Source of the DNA: Rebecca billardiae RCC1528
Taxonomy: Eukaryota > Protista > Haptophyta
Direction: 5' to 3'
Assembly: GCA_965240325.2 (NCBI GenBank)
Contig: OZ251228.1
Span: 620,001-684,000 of the forward strand
DNA length: 64,000 nt
Made by a program: the position numbers and the translations under genes. The notes under the pieces were generated by a model, which searched no databases, was not told the origin of the DNA, and was given only the letters and a program-made list of their open reading frames with translations. Below are positions 1,569 to 29,850 of the stretch, piece by piece. Every line of letters starts with the position of its first letter. The stretch's first letter is position 1.

Positions 1569-1657
1569 TCTGTGAAAGAACATCTCTGGCGGCTGCCGGC
1601 CAGAGAACATCTCTGGCGGGGCTTGCCCAGAGATGTTCTCTCACAGAGATGTTCTCT
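1569..1657. repeat. Cluster of four AGAACATCTCTG-type motifs (two forward, two reverse)
   Basis: AGAACATCTCTGGC at 1577 and 1604; CAGAGATGTTCTCT at 1628 and 1644; 21-bp inverted pair 1569-1589/1627-1647 with one mismatch. Confidence 0.85.
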
Positions 1658-1835
1658 GAATACGTAAGGGGCGCCAAGGGTGGTCGCCGACGCGCGCGAG
1701 TTCCAGAGTGCGAGTGCGCCCGCCCCGTCGCGCGGCCGCCGAGCCAGCCGAGCGTGATTTCATCTCCCGCCGCCCGGTCGCCGAGGCGAGACTTGCACAC
1801 GCGACCACGCCGACGTCGACGGGCCGCGCGCTCAG

Positions 1836-3416
1836 ATGCAGGCGGATAGCACGGCGGTCAAGCTCCTTCGGCGCGCATCTGCGCGAGGCGATGCGCGCGC
1901 CACGCTCCGTCTCGCCGAGCGCATGGCAGCCGGAGACGGCGTCGCGCAGGATGTTCGGGAGGCAAATCGCCTGACCCAGCTCGCCGCCGAGCGCGGGCTG
2001 GCAGACGCTCAGGTCGTCCTGGGCGACTTTCACCGACGAAACGGCGCAGGTGCTCGGGCCCAGGACCCCACCATGTCGGCGCACTGGTACCGGCTGGCGG
2101 CAGAGCAGGGCCACGCAGGCGCGCAGCACAATCTAGGCGTGTGTTACAAGGATGGCTTCGGCGTGGCGAAGGATGTGTCTGAGGCGCAGCGCTGGTGCCG
2201 CATGGCGGCCGAGCAGGGCCACGTCGATGCGCAGTTCAGCTTGGGCCTGTCCTACGACAAGGCATCCGACGAGAGCAAGGCGCCGCAGGATTGCGACGAG
2301 TCGGCGCGCTGGTATCAGCTGGCGGCCGAGCAGGGCCACGCAGATGCTCAGTACAATCTGGGCGTGTGCTACAAGCGCGGCCACGGCGTGGCGCAGGATG
2401 CGGGTGAGGCGGTGCGCTGGTGCAAAATGGCGGCGGAGCAGGGCAAGGCGGAGGCGCAGTACACTCTCGGCCGCTGTCACGAGCATGGCGATGGCGTGGG
2501 GCATGATTGGCATGAGGCGGTGAAGTGGTACCGGCTGGCGGCAGAGCAAGGCCACGCTGAAGCGCAATTTGATCTGAGTGTGTGCTGCCGAGAAGGCAAG
2601 GGCGCGTCGCAGGATTGGGATGAGGCGTTCCGCTGGACCCGGCTGGCGGCAGAGCAAGGCCACGCACTTGCCCAGTGCACTGTGGGAAAGCACTACGAGG
2701 GAGGCATGGGCGTGTCTCAGGACTGGCGCAAGGCTGCGCACTGGTTCCGGCTGGCGGCCGAGCAGGGCTACGCCCTGGCGCAATCCCACCTGGGTACCTG
2801 CTATGAAAAGGGCAATGGCGTGCCGCAGGATTTGGCCGAGGCGGTGCGCTGGTACCGACGTGCGGCAGCGCAGGGCCACATCAATGGGCAATGCGGCCTG
2901 GGCTTGTGCTACAGAAACGGCGTGGGCGTGGCGCAGGATTGGCGCGAGGCGGTGCGCTGGTTCCGGCTGTCGGCTGAGCAGGGCTACGCAGATGGGCAGT
3001 TCCACCTGGGCTTGTGTTTCCAGCTCGGCATGGGCGTACCGCCGAGTCAGACCAAGGCGGCTCACTGGTACCGCCTGGCAGTGGCTGGCGGCTCGCCTCC
3101 TGCTATGAGCGCGCTCGGGCTGCTGCTCTTGGCTGGCGAAGGAACGCAGCGCGATGTGACGCAGTGCGCGGGTCTGTTGCGCCGTGCGCACGAGCTCGAC
3201 AGCTCGCTCGACCCGAGCGAGGCGCTCTCGAAGTTGGCTGGGGAGCGCGAGGTGGTGTCCAAGTGCTGCATGGTGTGCGCCAAGACGGGCCGTGGTCTGA
3301 AGGTGTGCGAGCGCTGTCACGTGGCGGTCTTCTGCTCCCACGAGCACTTGCGGCGCGTGTGGAAGTTGCACAAGCCGCACTGCGCCAAGTGGTGCAAGCC
3401 AGCAGGCACGGCGTGA
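1836..3416 (+). CDS. Sel1-like repeat protein (~12 SLRs) with C-terminal MYND zinc finger; intronless, 526 aa
   Basis: Repeated WYRLAAEQGHAxAQxxLGxCYxxGxGV units; C-terminal CMVC...CERC...FCSHEH...WKLHKPHC MYND pattern. Confidence 0.92.
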   Translation: MQADSTAVKLLRRASARGDARATLRLAERMAAGDGVAQDVREANRLTQLAAERGLADAQVVLGDFHRRNGAGARAQDPTMSAHWYRLAAEQGHAGAQHNLGVCYKDGFGVAKDVSEAQRWCRMAAEQGHVDAQFSLGLSYDKASDESKAPQDCDESARWYQLAAEQGHADAQYNLGVCYKRGHGVAQDAGEAVRWCKMAAEQGKAEAQYTLGRCHEHGDGVGHDWHEAVKWYRLAAEQGHAEAQFDLSVCCREGKGASQDWDEAFRWTRLAAEQGHALAQCTVGKHYEGGMGVSQDWRKAAHWFRLAAEQGYALAQSHLGTCYEKGNGVPQDLAEAVRWYRRAAAQGHINGQCGLGLCYRNGVGVAQDWREAVRWFRLSAEQGYADGQFHLGLCFQLGMGVPPSQTKAAHWYRLAVAGGSPPAMSALGLLLLAGEGTQRDVTQCAGLLRRAHELDSSLDPSEALSKLAGEREVVSKCCMVCAKTGRGLKVCERCHVAVFCSHEHLRRVWKLHKPHCAKWCKPAGTA

Positions 3417-21603: not shown

Positions 21604-23247
21604 GTCATATATTTAACGTATATATAAGCTATATATATATATGTCATCATCGTCATCATCATGGCCCGCGGTGCAGGGCGGAACGCGCAGCGTGGAGCCC
21701 GCTCCGTGGGCCCTAACCACGTTTCAAAAAGATCTAGCTTTATATATATTGATCAATAAAGAAAAAAAGGGACGGGGCGCCGGGCGGTGTTTTCCAGAGT
21801 GGAGGAGACCGAGTTTCGATTTTTTGAGACCTCCTTACACATGGATTAGCGTCGAAAAAGGACGCGTCCGACGTCTTGAAGTTGAATAGTGAACAGAGGA
21901 ATCAACGAAACCCACGCCCAAGTGTGCGAGGCTGGGTAATTGTGGGTAGACTCTCGTTAATGTAGTGTGACCATAGTAAAATAATATGGCCTCGCCGCCG
22001 CAAGATGCCAAGAACGACCGTTGACATAATCGTCCAACCAACTCCAATACCAGTAGTGCGAGACATTGAAAAATACCCGCCGCAGCCATCCGTATAGTCG
22101 GAGCCGGAGGGGGCGCGCGCGGCGTGTTACATCCCCGCGTTTGTACATCCGGGAGACGAGGCGTCGCGAAGGCGCCCTCCCTCGTCGCGCCCCTCGCCGA
22201 GCCGACCCCCGCCGCCCGGGGGCGGGCTGCTGGGCGCACGAGCGCGAGCTGGCCACCGGCGTGAAGCCGAGGTGGAGCCAACTCGTCCTTCAGCTCGCAG
22301 GCGGCCCGGCTCCTGCGGCCGACCGCCCTGCTCGGCCTCGGGCATCCGCCTGCCTGCTTTGGCGCGGAGGCAAAACCGTACGGCCTAGCCCGCCGCCGCC
22401 ACGCGGCGGCCAGTCGGGGTGTCGTGTCGCGATTTGCGGGTGCGCGCCTCGCGGGGCAGGTGGCACTGTCCCGCCCGAGCGGTTCGGCGACCCCCGAAAT
22501 TCCCTCGCAAGCGCCCGCGAACGCGGATCCTCGCCGCGGGCTCGCCGGGGCCCATGTGCGCACCCGGGTGCCCCTGTCGAGCCAGTCTGGTGCGAGCACC
22601 GAAGGATGGTGCGGGCCGGGAGGCGTGGTGCGCGACGCCACCGAGGCCGCGGGCCAGCTAGGCACCGCTTGCGCGCCCACCAGTAGCCTGTGGCCCGACC
22701 ACGCGTTCAACCGTGGCACCCGATGGCAGCCCACGGTGCTCTGCGCCTCGGCTGGAGCGCGCTGTGCGCTCAGACGCGAGCGGCCGCCAAGTTGCCGGGT
22801 AGACGCCGTGCGCACGCTCTGGCAGCTGCGGATCAGCATCCTGCGAAGCTCTGCTGCCCCCACCTGAATGCTCGCACCACCCACCACGCGGCCCAGCCGG
22901 CCGCGCGCGCCGCCGCGGCCACCTCACCCGACGACTGCGAGCCTTGGGATCACTGCGCGTATATTGTGTGCTCAACGTGGGTGACAGCACAGCTGCGCCG
23001 CGGGCCCCCAACTACGTTGGTTCTGACGGAAGAGGACCGCGGAACGCGGTCATATCATCACTACATATCAGTGCTGACGATGCTGTCAATGATGCGCGCT
23101 CAGCGATCGAGCGCGCTGCCATCCGGATCCGCCGCCGGCCAGGCCGTGCCATGCAAGCATCATCAGCAGCATCTTCATGCAGCATATCATGAGATCGCCT
23201 ACGACTGCGGTCTGCGCTCGTCATGACGATCGTCGATATTCGCATCG

Positions 23248-26200
23248 TCATGATGTCGTTAGCCGCCACGCCTCAAGGCTGTGATCGTGGAACCACATGC
23301 GCTCGGGCCTGCCTTCGTCGAGACCGTAGTCGTCGTCTCGCATCAGTCGCACCCAGTGCGCCTTCTGCCCGACCTCGCCCACCGCCGACCCAAGCACCAC
23401 CGCTCGACACGCATGTGCGGGCCTCTCCGCGGCAGTGCCGCGCCCGCTCCAGACGCATGATGGAATCTGCACCTCGGCGCCAGAGATCTCGACTGGCTCT
23501 GCTGCTGGCGCAGCTGCTGGCGCAGCAGCTGGCGCGCGATCAAGCACGGCCGCGCCGGCGCCGATCGACCGAGCCATCGCGCCCGTCGAGAGCATCGCCG
23601 AATCGCTCAGTCCACGCTGCAAGCCGTCTCCTGGGATGCCCTCCGAGGCAGTTGCTCGAGGCCCACTCGTCGCGTCGGCAGTCCGCCTGGCATCTGCTGC
23701 CCAGCCGTCAGCACCCGCCTGCTCGAGCTCGAGCTCGTACGCAGCGGGCAGCGAGGGCTCGGGCTCGGCCTCCACAGCCTCGGCCTCGTCCACTGCCGCC
23801 TGCTCGAGCTCGAGCTCGTACGCAGCGGGCAGCGAGGGCTCTGGCTCGGCCTCCGCAGCCTCGGCCTCGTCCACTGCCGCCTGCTCGAGCTCGAGCTCGT
23901 ACGCAGCGGGCAGCGAGGGCTCGGGCTCGGCCTCCGCAGCCTCGGCCTCGTCCGCTGCCGCCTGCTCGAGCTCGAGCTCGTACGCAGCGGGCAGCGAGGG
24001 CTCGGGCTCGGACTCCGCAGCCTCGGCCTCGTCCGCTGCCGCCTGCTCGAGCTCGAGCTCGTACGCAGCGGGCAGCGAGGGCTCGGGCACAGCAGCCGGT
24101 GTGGGCGCAGCATCCGATGACTCGGCCTCGTCCGGCTGCGCCGCCGAGGTGGCGGCTGCCGGTGCTGCCGGCGCGTTCCACACTCGGCTCGCCTGCAGCC
24201 GGTGTGCCGAGTAGGACGCCCAGCGCGCGGCGATCAGCCCAGGGTCGACGAGGTGCGCTGGCAGCCGCACACGGTCGTCCTCGCCCTCCGACGGGCTCAA
24301 CTCGACGTGCACGTCCTCCGGCAGCTGCGAGTCCCAATCACGCCCGTGCTGCTCGCGGAACATTTGGAACGCCTTCCAGCGCGAGTCGATGAGCGACGGG
24401 TCGGTGAGCTGCCACGCGGAGAGGCTGACGAGGTCTGCAACGGCGCCATCGCTCGTAGCGGACTGTGCTGAGCCAGAGGGCTGCGGCTGCACAGCAACGC
24501 TGTCAGGGCTTGGAGAGTCAGCCGTGAGGACCTCGGCCTCATCCGCTGCAGCAGCGGGGGCTGCTGCTGCCGGTGCTGCCGGCGCGTTCCACACTCGGCT
24601 CGCCTGCAGCCGGTGTGCCGAGTAGGACGCCCAGCGCGCGGCGGCCAGACCCGGGTCACGGAGCTGCGCCGGCAGTGTGTCAATGCCAGCAATCTCCTGG
24701 ACGAGTGGCGCCGGCATCGGCCGCCACACGGCAGAGGCCGAGTCCCACAGGCGGGACGCCTGCACGCCGTGCGCCTCCCGCACCATGGTAGCAGGTTTGG
24801 CACCGGTGATCGAGGTCGAGCGCCAAAGAGCTGGCGGCAGCGTGGAGGGGGTCTCAGCATTGGACCCGGCCTCGTCCGCTGCCACCTGCTCGAGCTCGAG
24901 CTCGTACGCAGCGGGCAGCGAGGGCTCGGGCTCGGACTCCGCAGCCTCGGCCTCGTCCGCTGCCGCCTGCTCGAGCTCGAGCTCGTACGCAGCGGGCAGC
25001 GAGGGCTCCTGCGAGGGCTTGGCGGTCTCCATGGAAGCTGCCTGGTCTGCTGATGCCTGCTCGAGCTCGAGCAAGTATGCAGCGGGCAGCGAGCGCTCAG
25101 CAGCCGGTGTGGGCTTGGGCATGTCTGCAGACGCCTTCTCGAGCTCGAGCAGGTACGCTGTGGGCAACGAGGGCTCGGGTGAGGGCTCGAGCTCAGCAGC
25201 CTCCGAGGACTCGGCCTCGTCGGCTGCCGCTGGCATCGGCCGCCACACGGCCGATGCAGAGTCCCACAGGCGGGACGCCTGCAGGCCGTGCGCCTCCCGC
25301 ACCATGGTAGCAGGTTTGGCACCGGTGAGCTTCGAGGTCGAGCGCCAGGGAGCTGGCGGCAGCGTGGAGGGTGTCTCAGCATTGGGCTCGGGCTCGTCGG
25401 CTGCCGCCAGCTCGAGCTCGAGCTCGTACGCAGCGGGCAGCGAGGGCTCTGGCTCGGACTCCACAGCCTCAGCCTCGTCCGCTGCCGCCTGCTCGAGCTC
25501 GAGCTCGTACGCAGCGGGCAATGAGGGTTCCTGCCAGGGCTCGGCAGTCTCGACCGAAGCTGCCTGGTCTGCTGATGCCCGCTCGAGCTCGAGCAAGTAT
25601 GCAGCGGGCAGCGAGCGCTCAGCAGCCGGTGTGGGCTTGGGCATGTCTGCAGACGCCTTCTCGAGCTCGAGCAGGTACGCTGTGGGCAACGAGGGCTCGG
25701 GTGAGGGCTCGGGCTCAGCAGCCTCCGAGGACTCGGCCTCGTCCGCTGCCGCCTGCTCGAGCTCGAGCTCGTACGCAGCGGGTAGCGAGGGCTCGGGCTC
25801 GGCCTCCGCAGCCTCGGCCTCGTCCGCTGCCGCCAGCTCGAGCTCGAGCTCGTACGCAGCGGGCAGCGAGGGCTCGGGCTCGGCCTCCGCAGCCTCTGCC
25901 TCGTCCGCTGCCGCCTGCTCGAGCTCGAGCTCGTACGCAGCGGGCAATGAGGGTTCCTGCCAGGGCTCGGCAGTCTCGACCGAAGCTGCCTGGTCTGCTG
26001 ATGCCCGCTCGAGCTCGAGCAAGTATGCAGCGGGCAGCGAGCGCTCAGCAGCCGGTGTGGGCTTGGGCATGTCTGCAGACGCCTTCTCGAGCTCGAGCAG
26101 GTACGCTGTGGGCAACGAGGGCTCGGGTGAGGGCTCGGGCTCAGCAGCCTCCGAGGACTCGGCCTCGTCCGCTGCCGCCTGCTCGAGCTCGAGCTCGTAC

Positions 26201-28215
26201 GCAGCGGGCAGCGAGGGCTCGGGCTCGGCCTCCGCAGCCTCGGCCTCGTCCGCTGCCGCCAGCTCGAGCTCGAGCTCGTACGCAGCGGGCAGCGAGGGCT
26301 CGGGCTCGGCCTCCGCAGCCTCGGCCTCGTCCGCTGCCGCCTGCTCGAGCTCGAGCTCGTACGCAGCGGGTAGCGAGGGCTCGGGCTCGGACTCCGCAGC
26401 CTCTGCCTCGTCCGCTGCCGCCTGCTCGAGCTCGAGCTCGTACGCAGCGGGTAGCGAGGGCTCGGGCTCGGACTCCGCAGCCTCTGCCTCGTCCGCTGCC
26501 GCCAGCTCGAGCTCGAGCTCGTACGCAGCGGGTAGCGAGGGCTCGGGCTCGGACTCCGCAGCCTCGGCCTCGTCCGCTGCCGCCTGCTCGAGCTCGAGCT
26601 CGTACGCAGCGGGCAGCGAGGGCTCGGGCTCGGCCTCCGCAGCCTCTGCCTCGTCCGCTGCCGCCTGCTCGAGCTCGAGCTCGTACGCAGTGGGCAGCGA
26701 GGGCTCTGGCTCGGACTCCGCAGCCTCGGCCTCGTCCGCTGCCGCCTGCTCGAGCTCGAGCTCGTACGCAGCGGGCAGCGAGGGCTCGGGCTCGGCCTCC
26801 GCAGCCTCTGCCTCGTCCGCTGCCGCCTGCTCGAGCTCGAGCTCGTACGCAGTGGGCAGCGAGGGCTCGGGCTCGGACTCCGCAGCCTCGGCCTCGTCCG
26901 CTGCCGCCTGCTCGAGCTCGAGCTCGTACGCAGCGGGCAGCGAGGGCTCGGGCTCGGCCTCCGCAGCCTCGGCCTCGTCCGCTGCCGCCTGCTCGAGCTC
27001 GAGCTCGTACGCAGCGGGCAGCGAGGGCTCTGGCTCGGACTCCACAGCCTCGGCCTCGTCCGCTGCCGCCTGCTCGAGCTCGAGCTCGTACGCAGCGGGC
27101 AGCGAGGGCTCGGGCTCGGCCTCCGCAGCCTCGTCCACTGCCGCCTGCTCGAGCTCGAGCTCGTACGCAGCGGGCAGCGAGGGCTCGGGCTCAGACTCCG
27201 CAGCCTCGGCCTCGCCAGCTGCCGCCTGCTCGAGCTCGAGCTCGTACGCAGCGGCCAGGGAGGGCTCGGGCTCAGACTCCGCAGCCTCGGCCTCGTCCGC
27301 TGCCGCCTGCTCGAGCTCGAGCTCGTACGCAGCGGGCAGCGAGGGCTCGGGCTCGGACTCCGCAGCCTCGGCCTCGTCCGCTGCCGCCTGCTCGAGCTCG
27401 AGCTCGTACGCAGCGGCCAGGGAGGGCTCTGGCTCGGCCTCCGCAGCCTCGGCCTCGTCCGCTGCCGCCTGCTCGAGCTCGAGCTCGTACGCAGCGGGCA
27501 GCGAGGGCTCGGGCTCGGACTCCGCAGCCTCGGCCTCGTCCGCTGCCGCCTGCTCGAGCTCGAGCTCGTACGCAGCGGGCAGCGAGGGCTCGGGCTCGGT
27601 AGCAACAGACCCGTCGGTGTTGGGCTTCTCGATGCGCGCGCCAGCCGTTGATGAGGTTGCTGCGCCGCCCTGTGCCACAGCAGTCGCGCTGCGCCACGGC
27701 AGCACGTCTGCAAGCCAGCGCGCCTGGCTGCGCGCACGTGGTGGCGCATTGCCGCCGTCCTCGCTGAGCCACATGCCTGCGCCCAGACCGACGCCAGCAC
27801 CTGCGCCGAGTATCATCTGCTCGCGAGCCGTCGGCCGCTGCGCGGCAAAGTCTGCCGCGCCATCGGTGACGCGCTGTGCCCTACTGGCTGCTTGCGAGAT
27901 GGCCACCCTCGCACTCACTAATTCCTCGGCAGGCGTTCCGACCGTGCGCGGGATTCGCGTGGACACGAACGGCGTGAGAGTGGCGGCATCATCAGCGGCC
28001 GCGTGCGCCGGCTTGTCGCCAAAAATCGCCGCCGCCGCCACGCCGAGCATGAGCTCGCGCCGGCTGATCGGATGCGCCGACGTGGCATCCGCCTGCACGC
28101 GCCGGGAGTGTGCCGGGCGCGGGCCGTAGCGCAGAGCGCTGGCCGGGCACGCAAGCACGACGATAGTGACAACGGCGACGCGAACACGAGCGGCGACGGT
28201 CACGCGAGGCGTCAT
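23248..28215 (-). CDS. Plastid/thylakoid-targeted Glu/Ala/Pro-rich repeat protein, ~1655 aa, function unknown
   Basis: Start chosen at MTPRVTVAARVRVAVVTIVVLACPASA (signal peptide), then a basic transit-like stretch, then SRRELMLGVAAAAIFGDKPAHA (twin-Arg lumenal signal), hydrophobic MILGAGAGVGLGAGMWL, and ~36 SLPAAY(E/L)LELE repeats. The longer track ORF upstream is the antisense shadow of dapL. Confidence 0.8.
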   Translation of the reverse strand: MTPRVTVAARVRVAVVTIVVLACPASALRYGPRPAHSRRVQADATSAHPISRRELMLGVAAAAIFGDKPAHAAADDAATLTPFVSTRIPRTVGTPAEELVSARVAISQAASRAQRVTDGAADFAAQRPTAREQMILGAGAGVGLGAGMWLSEDGGNAPPRARSQARWLADVLPWRSATAVAQGGAATSSTAGARIEKPNTDGSVATEPEPSLPAAYELELEQAAADEAEAAESEPEPSLPAAYELELEQAAADEAEAAEAEPEPSLAAAYELELEQAAADEAEAAESEPEPSLPAAYELELEQAAADEAEAAESEPEPSLAAAYELELEQAAAGEAEAAESEPEPSLPAAYELELEQAAVDEAAEAEPEPSLPAAYELELEQAAADEAEAVESEPEPSLPAAYELELEQAAADEAEAAEAEPEPSLPAAYELELEQAAADEAEAAESEPEPSLPTAYELELEQAAADEAEAAEAEPEPSLPAAYELELEQAAADEAEAAESEPEPSLPTAYELELEQAAADEAEAAEAEPEPSLPAAYELELEQAAADEAEAAESEPEPSLPAAYELELELAAADEAEAAESEPEPSLPAAYELELEQAAADEAEAAESEPEPSLPAAYELELEQAAADEAEAAEAEPEPSLPAAYELELELAAADEAEAAEAEPEPSLPAAYELELEQAAADEAESSEAAEPEPSPEPSLPTAYLLELEKASADMPKPTPAAERSLPAAYLLELERASADQAASVETAEPWQEPSLPAAYELELEQAAADEAEAAEAEPEPSLPAAYELELELAAADEAEAAEAEPEPSLPAAYELELEQAAADEAESSEAAEPEPSPEPSLPTAYLLELEKASADMPKPTPAAERSLPAAYLLELERASADQAASVETAEPWQEPSLPAAYELELEQAAADEAEAVESEPEPSLPAAYELELELAAADEPEPNAETPSTLPPAPWRSTSKLTGAKPATMVREAHGLQASRLWDSASAVWRPMPAAADEAESSEAAELEPSPEPSLPTAYLLELEKASADMPKPTPAAERSLPAAYLLELEQASADQAASMETAKPSQEPSLPAAYELELEQAAADEAEAAESEPEPSLPAAYELELEQVAADEAGSNAETPSTLPPALWRSTSITGAKPATMVREAHGVQASRLWDSASAVWRPMPAPLVQEIAGIDTLPAQLRDPGLAAARWASYSAHRLQASRVWNAPAAPAAAAPAAAADEAEVLTADSPSPDSVAVQPQPSGSAQSATSDGAVADLVSLSAWQLTDPSLIDSRWKAFQMFREQHGRDWDSQLPEDVHVELSPSEGEDDRVRLPAHLVDPGLIAARWASYSAHRLQASRVWNAPAAPAAATSAAQPDEAESSDAAPTPAAVPEPSLPAAYELELEQAAADEAEAAESEPEPSLPAAYELELEQAAADEAEAAEAEPEPSLPAAYELELEQAAVDEAEAAEAEPEPSLPAAYELELEQAAVDEAEAVEAEPEPSLPAAYELELEQAGADGWAADARRTADATSGPRATASEGIPGDGLQRGLSDSAMLSTGAMARSIGAGAAVLDRAPAAAPAAAPAAEPVEISGAEVQIPSCVWSGRGTAAERPAHACRAVVLGSAVGEVGQKAHWVRLMRDDDYGLDEGRPERMWFHDHSLEAWRLTTS
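23720..27598 (-). repeat. Coding tandem repeat, 81-bp (27-aa) unit with a 426-bp higher-order unit
   Basis: GTACGCAGCGGGC at 23737 and 23818 (period 81); ATGAGGGTTCC at 25521 and 25947 (period 426). Confidence 0.95.
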
Positions 28216-28447
28216 CGATGCTCGGAGAGGGTGCGGCGGGGGTGTTGGCGTGTGTTGACCGGGCGATCGCTCTCGATTGTGATGCTGACGCGTCCGCCTG
28301 CCACGCACACGCGCGCGCGGGTTGCGGAGAAGGCGGGCGGAGGGCCATTGTCCGGTGAGCAACTCCAGCGCCCGGATTCGCCGGGCGTGAAACGCGGGCT
28401 CGATCGGCGTCTTCGTGGCCGCATCGCACGCGTCATCAGCGCGACCC

Positions 28448-29850
28448 ATGGCAGGCGGCGGCATGCTTTCCGTCTTCGTGGCCGCGGCGGCTTTGGGCGC
28501 GACGACGGCGTCGGCGGTGACGTCGCGCGTGCAGCGCAACCCCAACATGGCCAAGCTGCAGGCTGGGTGCGCCGCTCGCGCCGACCTCGACGGCCGCGCG
28601 CACGCGCCGCGCGCGCACGTCGAGCGCGGACTGACCGTGCCTTCGCGACCGACCACCGCACGTCCGCCAGGTACCTCTTCCCCGAGATCGCGCGGCGGCG
28701 CAACGCGTTCCTCGAGGCGAACCCTGGGGCGAACATCATCAGCCTCGGCATCGGCGACACCACGCAGCCCATCCCGAAGCACATCCTCGCCGGGCTGCAG
28801 GCGGGCTCGAGCAAGCTCGGCACCAAGGAGGGCTACTCCGGGTACGGCGCAGAGCAGGGCGTGGGCGACTTGCGCGCGAAGATCGCGACGAAGCTGTACA
28901 ACGGGCTGATCAAGCCGGAGGAGGTCTTCGTCTCCGACGGCGCCAAGTGCGACATCGGCCGGCTGCAGCTCATGTTTGGGCAGGAGGTGACGTCGGCCGT
29001 GCAGGACCCGTCGTATCCCGTCTACGTCGACACGTCGGTAATGATGGGGCAGACGGGCGTCGTCGACTCGTCGACGCCGGCTGGGCAGTACCCGGGGATC
29101 GTGTACATGGCGTGCAACCCGTCGAACGACTTCTTCCCCGACCTCGACAGCCTGCAGCGCACCGACGTCATCTACTTCTGCTCGCCCAACAACCCGACCG
29201 GCGCGGCCGCGACCAAGGAGCAGCTCGAGCGGCTTGTCAAGTTCGCAAAGGCGAACGGCTCGATCCTCGTCTTTGACGCCGCGTACGCGCCGTTCATCCG
29301 CGACGCGTCGCTGCCCAAGTCGATCTACGAGATCGAGGGCGCGCGCGAGGTCGCGATCGAGGTCAACTCCTTCTCCAAGTACGCGGGCTTCACCGGCGTG
29401 CGGCTCGGCTGGACCATCGTGCCGGACGAGCTCAAGTACGCGGACGGCACGCCGGTGCGCAACGACTTCAACCGCGTGATGTGCACGGTCTTCAACGGCG
29501 CGTCGAACATCGTGCAGAGCGGCGGGCTCGCGTGCCTCGACGACGAGGGGCTCGCGGAGATCCAGGCGCTGATCGAGTACTACCTCGGCAACGCCAAGAT
29601 CCTGCGCGACGCGATGACGGAGCTCGGCTACTCCGTGCACGGCGGCACTGACTCGCCGTACGTCTTTGTCGACCTCGAGGGCAAGAGCTCGTGGGACATG
29701 TTCTCCGAGATCATGGAGAAGGCGCAGGTGATCACCATCCCCGGCGCCGGCTTCGGCCCCGGCGGCGAGGGCTTCCTCCGCCTCTCGGCGTTCGCACCGC
29801 GCGATTCGTGCATCGAGGCCGCCGCGCGCTTGAAGAAGATGCTCGGCTAA
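28448..29850 (+). CDS. dapL: LL-diaminopimelate aminotransferase, plastid-targeted; 2 exons (intron 28567-28670), ~432 aa
   Basis: RNPNMAKLQAGYLFPEI, IISLGIGDTTQP, GYSGYGAEQG, FVSDGAKCDI, FCSPNNPTG, SFSKYAGFTGVRLGW (PLP lysine); N-terminal signal MLSVFVAAAALGA. Start could be ATG 28463. Confidence 0.96.

Follow-up and report, generated by a model that had tools for sequence, protein, structure and literature searches.

A long acidic repeat gene in a GC-rich alga

We analysed a 64,000 nucleotide stretch of contig OZ251228.1 from the haptophyte Rebecca billardiae RCC1528 (assembly GCA_965240325.2, positions 620,001 to 684,000 of the forward strand; in the following called the window) and in particular a long gene on its minus strand. 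This gene encodes a strongly acidic protein with a leader of three parts, a large array of short repeats, a set of tryptophan (Trp) motifs and a small C-terminal domain (Table 1). Judged from its sequence the gene is real and nuclear, and belongs to a very GC-rich alga that carries a complex red-type plastid as found in haptophytes. The GC content of the window lies within the range given for Diacronema lutheri, 73% (PMC8379373).

On the minus strand the reading frame is open from position 29640 to 23248. The first methionine that yields a sensible protein is encoded by the ATG at 28215, which is the first of 1,655 codons before the stop codon at 23248–23250 is reached. An earlier reading of the window, made from the letters alone (in the following the sequence-only reading), had given the same position and strand for the gene, in agreement with our re-reading of the open reading frame (ORF). 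In-frame methionines are also found further upstream, between 28449 and 28548. These are antisense to exon 1 of a neighbouring aminotransferase gene, such that 28215 was taken as the start; initiation at one of the upstream positions would moreover bury the signal peptide. The frame itself is fixed by the N-terminal leader, by C-terminal modules that are conserved across species and by the length differences between the repeat units, all of which are multiples of three. Since the leader, the array and the conserved modules share one uninterrupted frame, we take the whole ORF as coding. Introns are present in this genome, the neighbouring aminotransferase gene providing a 104-nt GT..AG example, and an in-frame intron may also exist inside the repeat gene.

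Table 1. Position of the repeat gene, its segments and the adjoining gene within the window
Feature	Residues	Position	Strand	Remarks
Whole coding sequence, 1,655 codons and stop	1-1655	23248..28215	-	read as single exon; frame fixed by leader, conservation of C-terminal modules and repeat lengths in multiples of 3
Signal peptide	1-27	28135..28215	-	sequence reading; n-region with 3 Arg, h-region VAVVTIVVLAC, c-region PASA, then Leu
Short basic transit-like stretch	28-50	28066..28134	-	LRYGPRPAHSRRVQADATSAHPI; read from sequence, function putative
Twin-arginine-type lumen-targeting peptide (putative)	51-73	27997..28065	-	SRRELM, h-region LGVAAAAIFG, c-region Lys, AHA
N-terminal mature segment	74-133	27817..27996	-	near neutral, no relatives
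Gly/Ala-rich weakly hydrophobic segment	134-150	27766..27816	-	MILGAGAGVGLGAGMWL; marginal span
Acidic array block 1	206-943	25387..27600	-	27 motif copies including two 142-residue super-repeats (AYLLELEK, AYLLELER units)
Trp block a	944-996	25228..25386	-	contains REAHGLQASRLWDSASAVWRP; core half of the Trp motif of the family
Acidic array block 2	997-1117	24865..25227	-	4 motif copies
Trp block b	1118-1169	24709..24864	-	duplicate of block a
Three full Trp motifs	within 1170-1357	24145..24708	-	L.L.DP.LI.ARW..[FY]..H..QA.R[VI]W[DN]
Acidic array block 3	1375-1500	23716..24093	-	5 motif copies, DNA 98% alike
Low-complexity Ala/Pro/Gly linker	1501-1574	23494..23715	-	pLDDT <50
Conserved C-terminal domain	1575-1655	23251..23493	-	four invariant Trp; models as SH3-like beta-barrel with C-terminal helix
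Aminotransferase gene		exon 1 28448..28566; intron 28567..28670; exon 2 to 29850	+	GT..AG intron of 104 nt, splits a Gly codon

The acidic repeat array

The most prominent part of the protein is formed by the repeats, for which the sequence-only reading had counted about 36 motifs on spacers rich in Glu, Ala and Pro. The motif SL[PA][AT]AY[EL]LELE was found exactly 36 times, and 28 of these copies have the full form PSLP[AT]AYELELE. The motifs follow each other mostly at a distance of 27 residues, the remaining distances being 25, 26, 30 or 32 residues. At the DNA level the repeats are seen as an 81-bp tandem array at 25387–27599 with 26.9 copies and a second one at 23715–24088 with 4.6 copies and 98% matches. 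Within the window, 33 copies of a 24-nt core pattern were counted against 0 expected, all of them located in the repeat gene. Many of the units are identical at the DNA level. A larger period of 426 nt (25387–26360) combines two canonical units with the variants AYLLELEK and AYLLELER; this super-repeat is present twice in block 1 and partially in block 2.

The composition of the protein is dominated by few residue types (A 25%, E 17.5%, P 10%, L 10%). In total 364 acidic residues (D+E, 22%) stand against 74 basic ones (K+R), which gives a calculated isoelectric point (pI) of 4.05 and a net charge of about -288 for the whole protein. A single 27-residue unit contributes a charge of -9 and contains no basic residue. 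For the mature protein of ~165 kDa the net charge is near -295.

AlphaFold2 (AF2) was run with 3 sequences on residues 1260–1655. As a whole the model was poor, with a predicted local distance difference test score (pLDDT) of 54 and a predicted TM score (pTM) of 0.22, and the secondary structure alone was used. In this prediction the acidic units adopt helices of 18–24 residues (mostly 18–19) separated by spacers of ~8 residues, in line with the helix-and-spacer picture that had been proposed from the letters. Each 27-residue unit would combine a short helix of Glu and Ala with a PEPEPS spacer behind it. Amphipathic helices for membrane binding were considered and rejected, given the low hydrophobic moments (0.12–0.17) of both the acidic helix and the Trp motif.

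The leader resembles that of proteins routed to the thylakoid lumen

The signal peptide provides the highest hydrophobicity peak of the whole protein, with a mean Kyte-Doolittle value over 19 residues of 2.17 and a core of 11 residues. The following transit-like stretch is basic and poor in acidic residues (4 Arg, 2 His, 1 Asp). We judged by eye whether both parts form the bipartite presequence of red-type complex plastids, using the published criteria of ASAFind. The cleavage site (ASA followed by Leu) and the basic, acid-poor transit part were in agreement with such a presequence. Leu is among the residues (F, W, Y, L) that the published rule for red-type complex plastids accepts at position +1.

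About 24 residues past the signal-peptide cleavage site with its Leu at +1, a third part begins. In residues 51–73 (SRRELMLGVAAAAIFGDKPAHA) a twin-arginine motif precedes a core of moderate hydrophobicity; a c-region with Lys and a terminal AxA complete the peptide. Signals for twin-arginine translocation (Tat) require the sequence (S/T)-R-R-x-hydrophobic-hydrophobic, which is found here as SRRELM at residues 51–56. As further required, an uncharged h-region of 12 residues (LMLGVAAAAIFG) and a c-region (DKPAHA, then AADD) follow; by bacterial rules the h-region is at the short end of the length range. The strict twin-arginine pattern has a single match in the 101,767 six-frame residues of the window, which is this leader, and it appeared with a frequency of only 0.0002 in composition-matched shuffles of the N-terminal part. 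The tripartite leader thus reads as the sequence-only reading had described it, and its twin-arginine part is far from what is expected by chance.

In addition the profile of PsbQ from Pfam (PF05757) matched with its positions 31–115 of 204 at an E-value of 4.3e-4. The score of 20.9 bits is below the gathering cutoff of 26.9, and the match covers the precursor leader and the first part of the mature protein while the four-helix bundle (116–204) remains uncovered. An identity of the protein as PsbQ was rejected on these grounds. PsbQ precursors are classical Tat cargo of the lumen. The leader shares with Tat-routed lumen precursors of the PsbQ type from complex plastids the order of the parts, the SRR-x-hydrophobic motif, the moderate h-region, the c-region with its basic residue and the AxA, whereas the cargo differs: a repeat polyanion of ~165 kDa would take the place of a compact folded domain. 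We consider the leader to be convincingly of the lumen type, resembling that of a classical Tat lumen protein.

The sequence-only reading had also listed one hydrophobic segment. Such a segment is present at residues 134–150, but as a membrane span it is marginal at best. Over this segment no 19-residue window averages above 1.2 on the Kyte-Doolittle scale, the summed insertion energy on the Hessa scale comes to about +2.3 kcal/mol, and a similar hydrophobicity is reached in a stretch near residue 1540. The marginal character of the segment favours a soluble lumenal protein. A feature search of the ESM Atlas with the N-terminal segment returned a weak score of 0.77.

Trp motifs and a predicted C-terminal barrel define a small protein family

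Besides the acidic motif the protein contains the second repeat family built around Trp that had been noticed earlier; we counted QASR[LV]W four times and DPxLxxxRW three times. To find relatives we carried out an exhaustive search with residues 1110–1655 against 1.84 billion representatives, which gave four matches (P0001 to P0004). Two of them are true relatives, namely P0001 (409 residues, E-value 1.4e-14) and P0004 (355 residues, E-value 8.4e-4), while P0002 and P0003 were rejected as low-complexity chance matches with unrelated repeats. Both relatives are encoded on short contigs from the Joint Genome Institute (JGI) with 66% and 60% GC, respectively, and therefore come from other organisms. 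According to an exact look-up in the protein collection they are singletons without names.

All three proteins have in common a Trp motif of ~40 residues, L.L.DP.LI.ARW..[FY]..H.QQA.R[VI]WD.{5}W, that is repeated several times with acidic spacers in between. The window protein contains three full and two half copies, P0001 four to five and P0004 at least three. Conservation within the family is highest in the region of the three full motifs, on which the match to P0001 is centred. In the AF2 prediction the Trp motifs are helical. The second common element is the C-terminal domain of ~75 residues with the form IP..VW...VGSA..VG.A.WV...EG...W..D.SL..W, for which the alignment of the three proteins has 17 invariant columns including four Trp. 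The 27-residue acidic unit PSLPAAYELELE, in contrast, is absent in P0001 and P0004. Conservation across species thus concerns the Trp motif and the C-terminal domain rather than the acidic 27-mer. Since both relatives lack this unit, the array of 36 copies is a recent, homogenised and species-specific expansion of the acidic spacer of the family. P0001 and P0004 are nevertheless acidic themselves (pI 4.3–5.0) and rich in Trp. The acidity is therefore a trait of the family and not merely a by-product of the repeat.

For the C-terminal 81 residues alone AF2 provided a model with a pLDDT of 75 and a pTM of 0.65, in which four strands are followed by a C-terminal helix. The small globular C-terminus of the sequence-only reading is hence found again as a domain that is conserved in two other organisms and that models as a barrel. 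Comparison of the model with known structures using Foldseek, VIA-align and the Atlas returned small SH3-like barrels (KOW, Tudor, PWWP, chromo, YorP, PsaE, NdhS). The scores (Z of 4.5–5.9, Foldseek E-values of at least 0.3, TM of ~0.5) are typical of a common arrangement or of chance, though all top rows were barrels. The feature search of the ESM Atlas with the barrel gave a weak score of 0.87. To the KOW, Tudor, PWWP, chromo, PsaE and NdhS barrels the modelled domain with its four strands and C-terminal helix aligns at these generic scores; it matches no sequence family. The model thus suggests an SH3-like fold class, from which no ligand or function follows.

The Trp motif, the acidic spacer and the predicted SH3-like barrel together form the signature of a small family that is unannotated so far. 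Searches of Pfam, NCBIfam and PDB sequences with all parts of the protein gave nothing but the sub-threshold PsbQ match. Word-index protein searches gave no match for the whole protein nor for its N-terminal 205 residues; with a profile of the three family members P0004 alone was returned, the candidate list being flooded by repeat words. Two scans of metagenome contigs with family alignments produced pattern matches, none of which was confirmed by tblastn. The term "undescribed" that had been used for the protein is therefore supported, with two unannotated fragments among the 1.84 billion representatives as its only kin. Whatever the location of the protein, a new family with a Trp motif and an SH3-like barrel is represented in the window alga and in two other sources, and the array is a clear case of an acidic spacer that expanded to 36 copies in one species. 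The two contigs compared for synteny (L001 and L002) have no flanking genes in common with the window. On L001, which carries P0001, a convergent ORF of 112 residues is located downstream (1647–1985, minus strand) that has no counterpart beside the window gene.

A lumen-directed polyanion as tentative reading

Based on the statistics of the leader, the weakness of the membrane segment and the composition, we tentatively favour the reading that the protein is a lumen-directed polyanionic scaffold, or a buffer for cations or protons, that is docked via its Trp motifs and its barrel. The signal peptide, the transit-like stretch and a cleavable twin-arginine peptide would carry the precursor across the plastid envelope membranes and then bring its N-terminus, probably along with the entire chain, to the thylakoid lumen. 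There, the Trp motifs and the barrel may serve for docking, either to a partner or among themselves. With its hundreds of carboxylates the array would bind Ca2+, Mg2+ or protons at high capacity and low affinity, and could also take up space in the lumen as a charged steric filler.

Calsequestrin, the acidic N-terminal part of the thylakoid protein CAS and the Glu/Pro/Ala-rich GPA protein of Emiliania are acidic cation binders of high capacity and low affinity. With these the window protein shares a high density of carboxylates (22% D+E, no compensating base), a composition rich in Glu, Ala and Pro, and the position behind a signal peptide. Calsequestrin differs in that it is a folded, thioredoxin-like protein, in contrast to the tandem array of helices and spacers predicted here. 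No homology to any of these binders was detected, the comparison with GPA being made by the description of its composition.

If the protein is made and lumenal, no dedicated polyanionic scaffold or buffer would have been described for a thylakoid lumen before. The cargo limits of the twin-arginine signal would then also be put to the test, and both aspects would bear on how lumenal ions and protons are managed for photosynthesis and carbon concentration in algae with red-type plastids. In the most far-reaching form of this idea, the protein would be a giant lumen polyanion whose ~360 carboxylates store Ca2+ or Mg2+ and carry or buffer protons at the pH values of the lumen, with a Tat-type signal that handles a flexible cargo of ~1,500 residues. 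We regard this form as quite unlikely. If true, such a polyanion could feed the lumenal carbonic-anhydrase step of carbon concentration or set the width of the lumen. To our knowledge, a giant polyanionic scaffold is a kind of protein that has not been described for any thylakoid.

Several points weigh against a lumenal polyanion. Tat systems pass unfolded linkers of ~75–110 residues, with an efficiency that drops with the unfolded length (PMC13186574). A flexible polyanion of ~1,500 residues would thus be an unusual Tat cargo, which constitutes the main objection. The binding of cations or protons is an argument from composition. Furthermore, the transit-like part is short (~23 residues), P0001 and P0004 are cut at their 5' ends such that they provide no leader for comparison, the window protein was absent from the public protein collection when looked up by exact sequence, and a look-up of sequencing runs for 23000–28500 returned none. 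Finally, the GC content at third codon positions (GC3) of the repeat ORF is 0.69–0.83 compared to 0.96 in the adjoining aminotransferase gene and to ~0.90–0.97 in the majority of the window's other coding stretches. This low value suggests that the codon bias is weak, that expression is low or that the gene is young. A weak third-position bias is also seen for P0001 and P0004 (0.76 and 0.56, respectively).

Alternative locations of the protein

Due to the problem of the cargo length, an anchor in the thylakoid membrane is a serious rival to the lumenal polyanion, even if we consider it unlikely. Here, Tat would export just the ~60-residue N-terminal segment, residues 134–150 would stop the transfer, and the array, the Trp motifs and the barrel would reside in the stroma. 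The stromal array could then serve as a polyanionic brush or tether, i.e. as a membrane spacer or as a docking site for a partner in the stroma or the pyrenoid. In such an arrangement ~1,500 flexible residues need not be moved through Tat. The Gly-x-Gly hydrophobic stretch, which is located 60 residues past the predicted cleavage site and is followed by several Arg on its C-terminal side, would be well placed for it. The list of barrel folds includes PsaE and NdhS, subunits at the stromal face of thylakoids, though with generic Z values of 4.5–5. However, the span is marginal by both hydrophobicity measures given above and hardly distinguished from the stretch near residue 1540, the charge is near even on both sides of the segment, and the relatives offer no N-terminus with which it could be compared.

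Alternatively, the signal peptide alone may be used and the twin-arginine part be a look-alike. The product would then be an acidic protein of the secretory pathway, the endomembranes or the periplastidial space, with a final place at the cell surface, in a vacuole or between the membranes of the plastid, for example a cation-binding matrix protein similar to further algal proteins rich in Glu, Pro and Ala. The signal peptide is indeed the strongest feature of the leader, the transit-like part comprises few residues, and position +1 is occupied by Leu instead of Phe. Highly acidic repeat proteins are moreover common in secreted matrices. Against this stands that a twin-arginine pattern complete with h-region, c-region Lys and AxA is unique among ~102,000 residues and occurs at the expected place, as well as the sub-threshold match to the precursor leader of PsbQ. 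Also the signal peptide of the neighbouring aminotransferase lacks a Phe at +1. Such aminotransferases are usually plastid-directed, and if this holds for the neighbour, Leu is not disqualifying here. Overall we consider a secretory or related location to be distinctly unlikely.

Coding potential of the repeat gene

Still less probable is that the gene has no functional product at all, being young or decaying, a stop-free 81-bp satellite that is open by chance, or an array with a number of copies that arose as an artefact of the assembly. In support of this one may take the third-position GC content, which is well under that of the neighbouring genes, and the variable sites among the repeat copies, which are spread evenly over the three codon positions (10/12/11). 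The open frames of the region point in the same direction, since three other frames of the array are open over 743–1,167 codons and upstream of its ATG the ORF continues without a stop over 475 codons. On the other hand, the protein sequence of the modules outside the repeats is conserved in exactly this frame in two other organisms, a complete and statistically unusual leader is present at the first ATG after the divergent neighbour, all insertions and deletions between units keep the frame by comprising whole codons, and the C-terminal domain is predicted to fold, with a pLDDT of 75. We consider the conservation of the non-array modules in the same frame in both relatives as the decisive evidence for coding. 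For a silent gene or a secreted protein, we would be left with an ordinary lineage-specific repeat protein.

The three additional frames across the 81-bp array are located at 24297–27800 on the minus strand (1,167 codons, Ser/Arg-rich product), at 24677–28129 on the plus strand (1,150 codons, Ser-rich product) and at 25371–27602 on the plus strand (743 codons, Arg/Ala/Pro-rich product). They are by-products of a stop-free repeat unit in GC-rich DNA and are no argument for overlapping genes. The upstream extension of 475 codons (minus-strand frame 28216–29640), which runs antisense through the aminotransferase gene, is likewise an artefact of the GC-rich sequence and could mislead gene callers into a longer model.

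Comparison with Rubisco linkers

A different role that had been proposed in the sequence-only reading is that of a tether for Rubisco. In the pyrenoid linkers EPYC1, CsLinker and PYCO1 short structured motifs alternate with flexible spacers as in the window protein, and PYCO1 also combines two kinds of motif in one chain; otherwise there is no sequence relation, and the window protein differs by its strong acidity and its lumen-type leader. The known Rubisco linkers are basic. A recent review covers only linkers of Chlamydomonas, Chlorella and Phaeodactylum, the RbcS extension of a hornwort and a suggested chlorarachniophyte candidate, and names no linker of a haptophyte; the stickers of PYCO1 are KWSPRGGS and GTGYNP (PMC13655443). 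Despite the layout of repeats and spacers and the two motif families, one of which has Trp beside Arg, a pyrenoid linker or a Rubisco-to-thylakoid tether of the EPYC1, PYCO1 or RBMP kind with motifs as stickers for red-type Rubisco is a poor fit and highly improbable, since the acidity (pI and net charge as given above) is opposite to that of the basic linkers, the leader points to the wrong side of the membrane unless the protein is membrane-anchored, both PYCO1 stickers are absent from the sequence, and the search with residues 1110–1655 gave no relative in organisms with a described linker.

The neighbouring aminotransferase gene

The repeat gene is arranged head-to-head with a class I/II aminotransferase gene on the plus strand (28448–29850; PF00155, E-value 4.5e-37), the two start codons being separated by 232 bp. 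From its N-terminal motif the encoded enzyme looks like an LL-diaminopimelate aminotransferase. Its leader consists of a signal peptide (…TTASA, then Val), after which ~6 residues lead to the conserved start of the mature enzyme, such that its transit part is unusually short.

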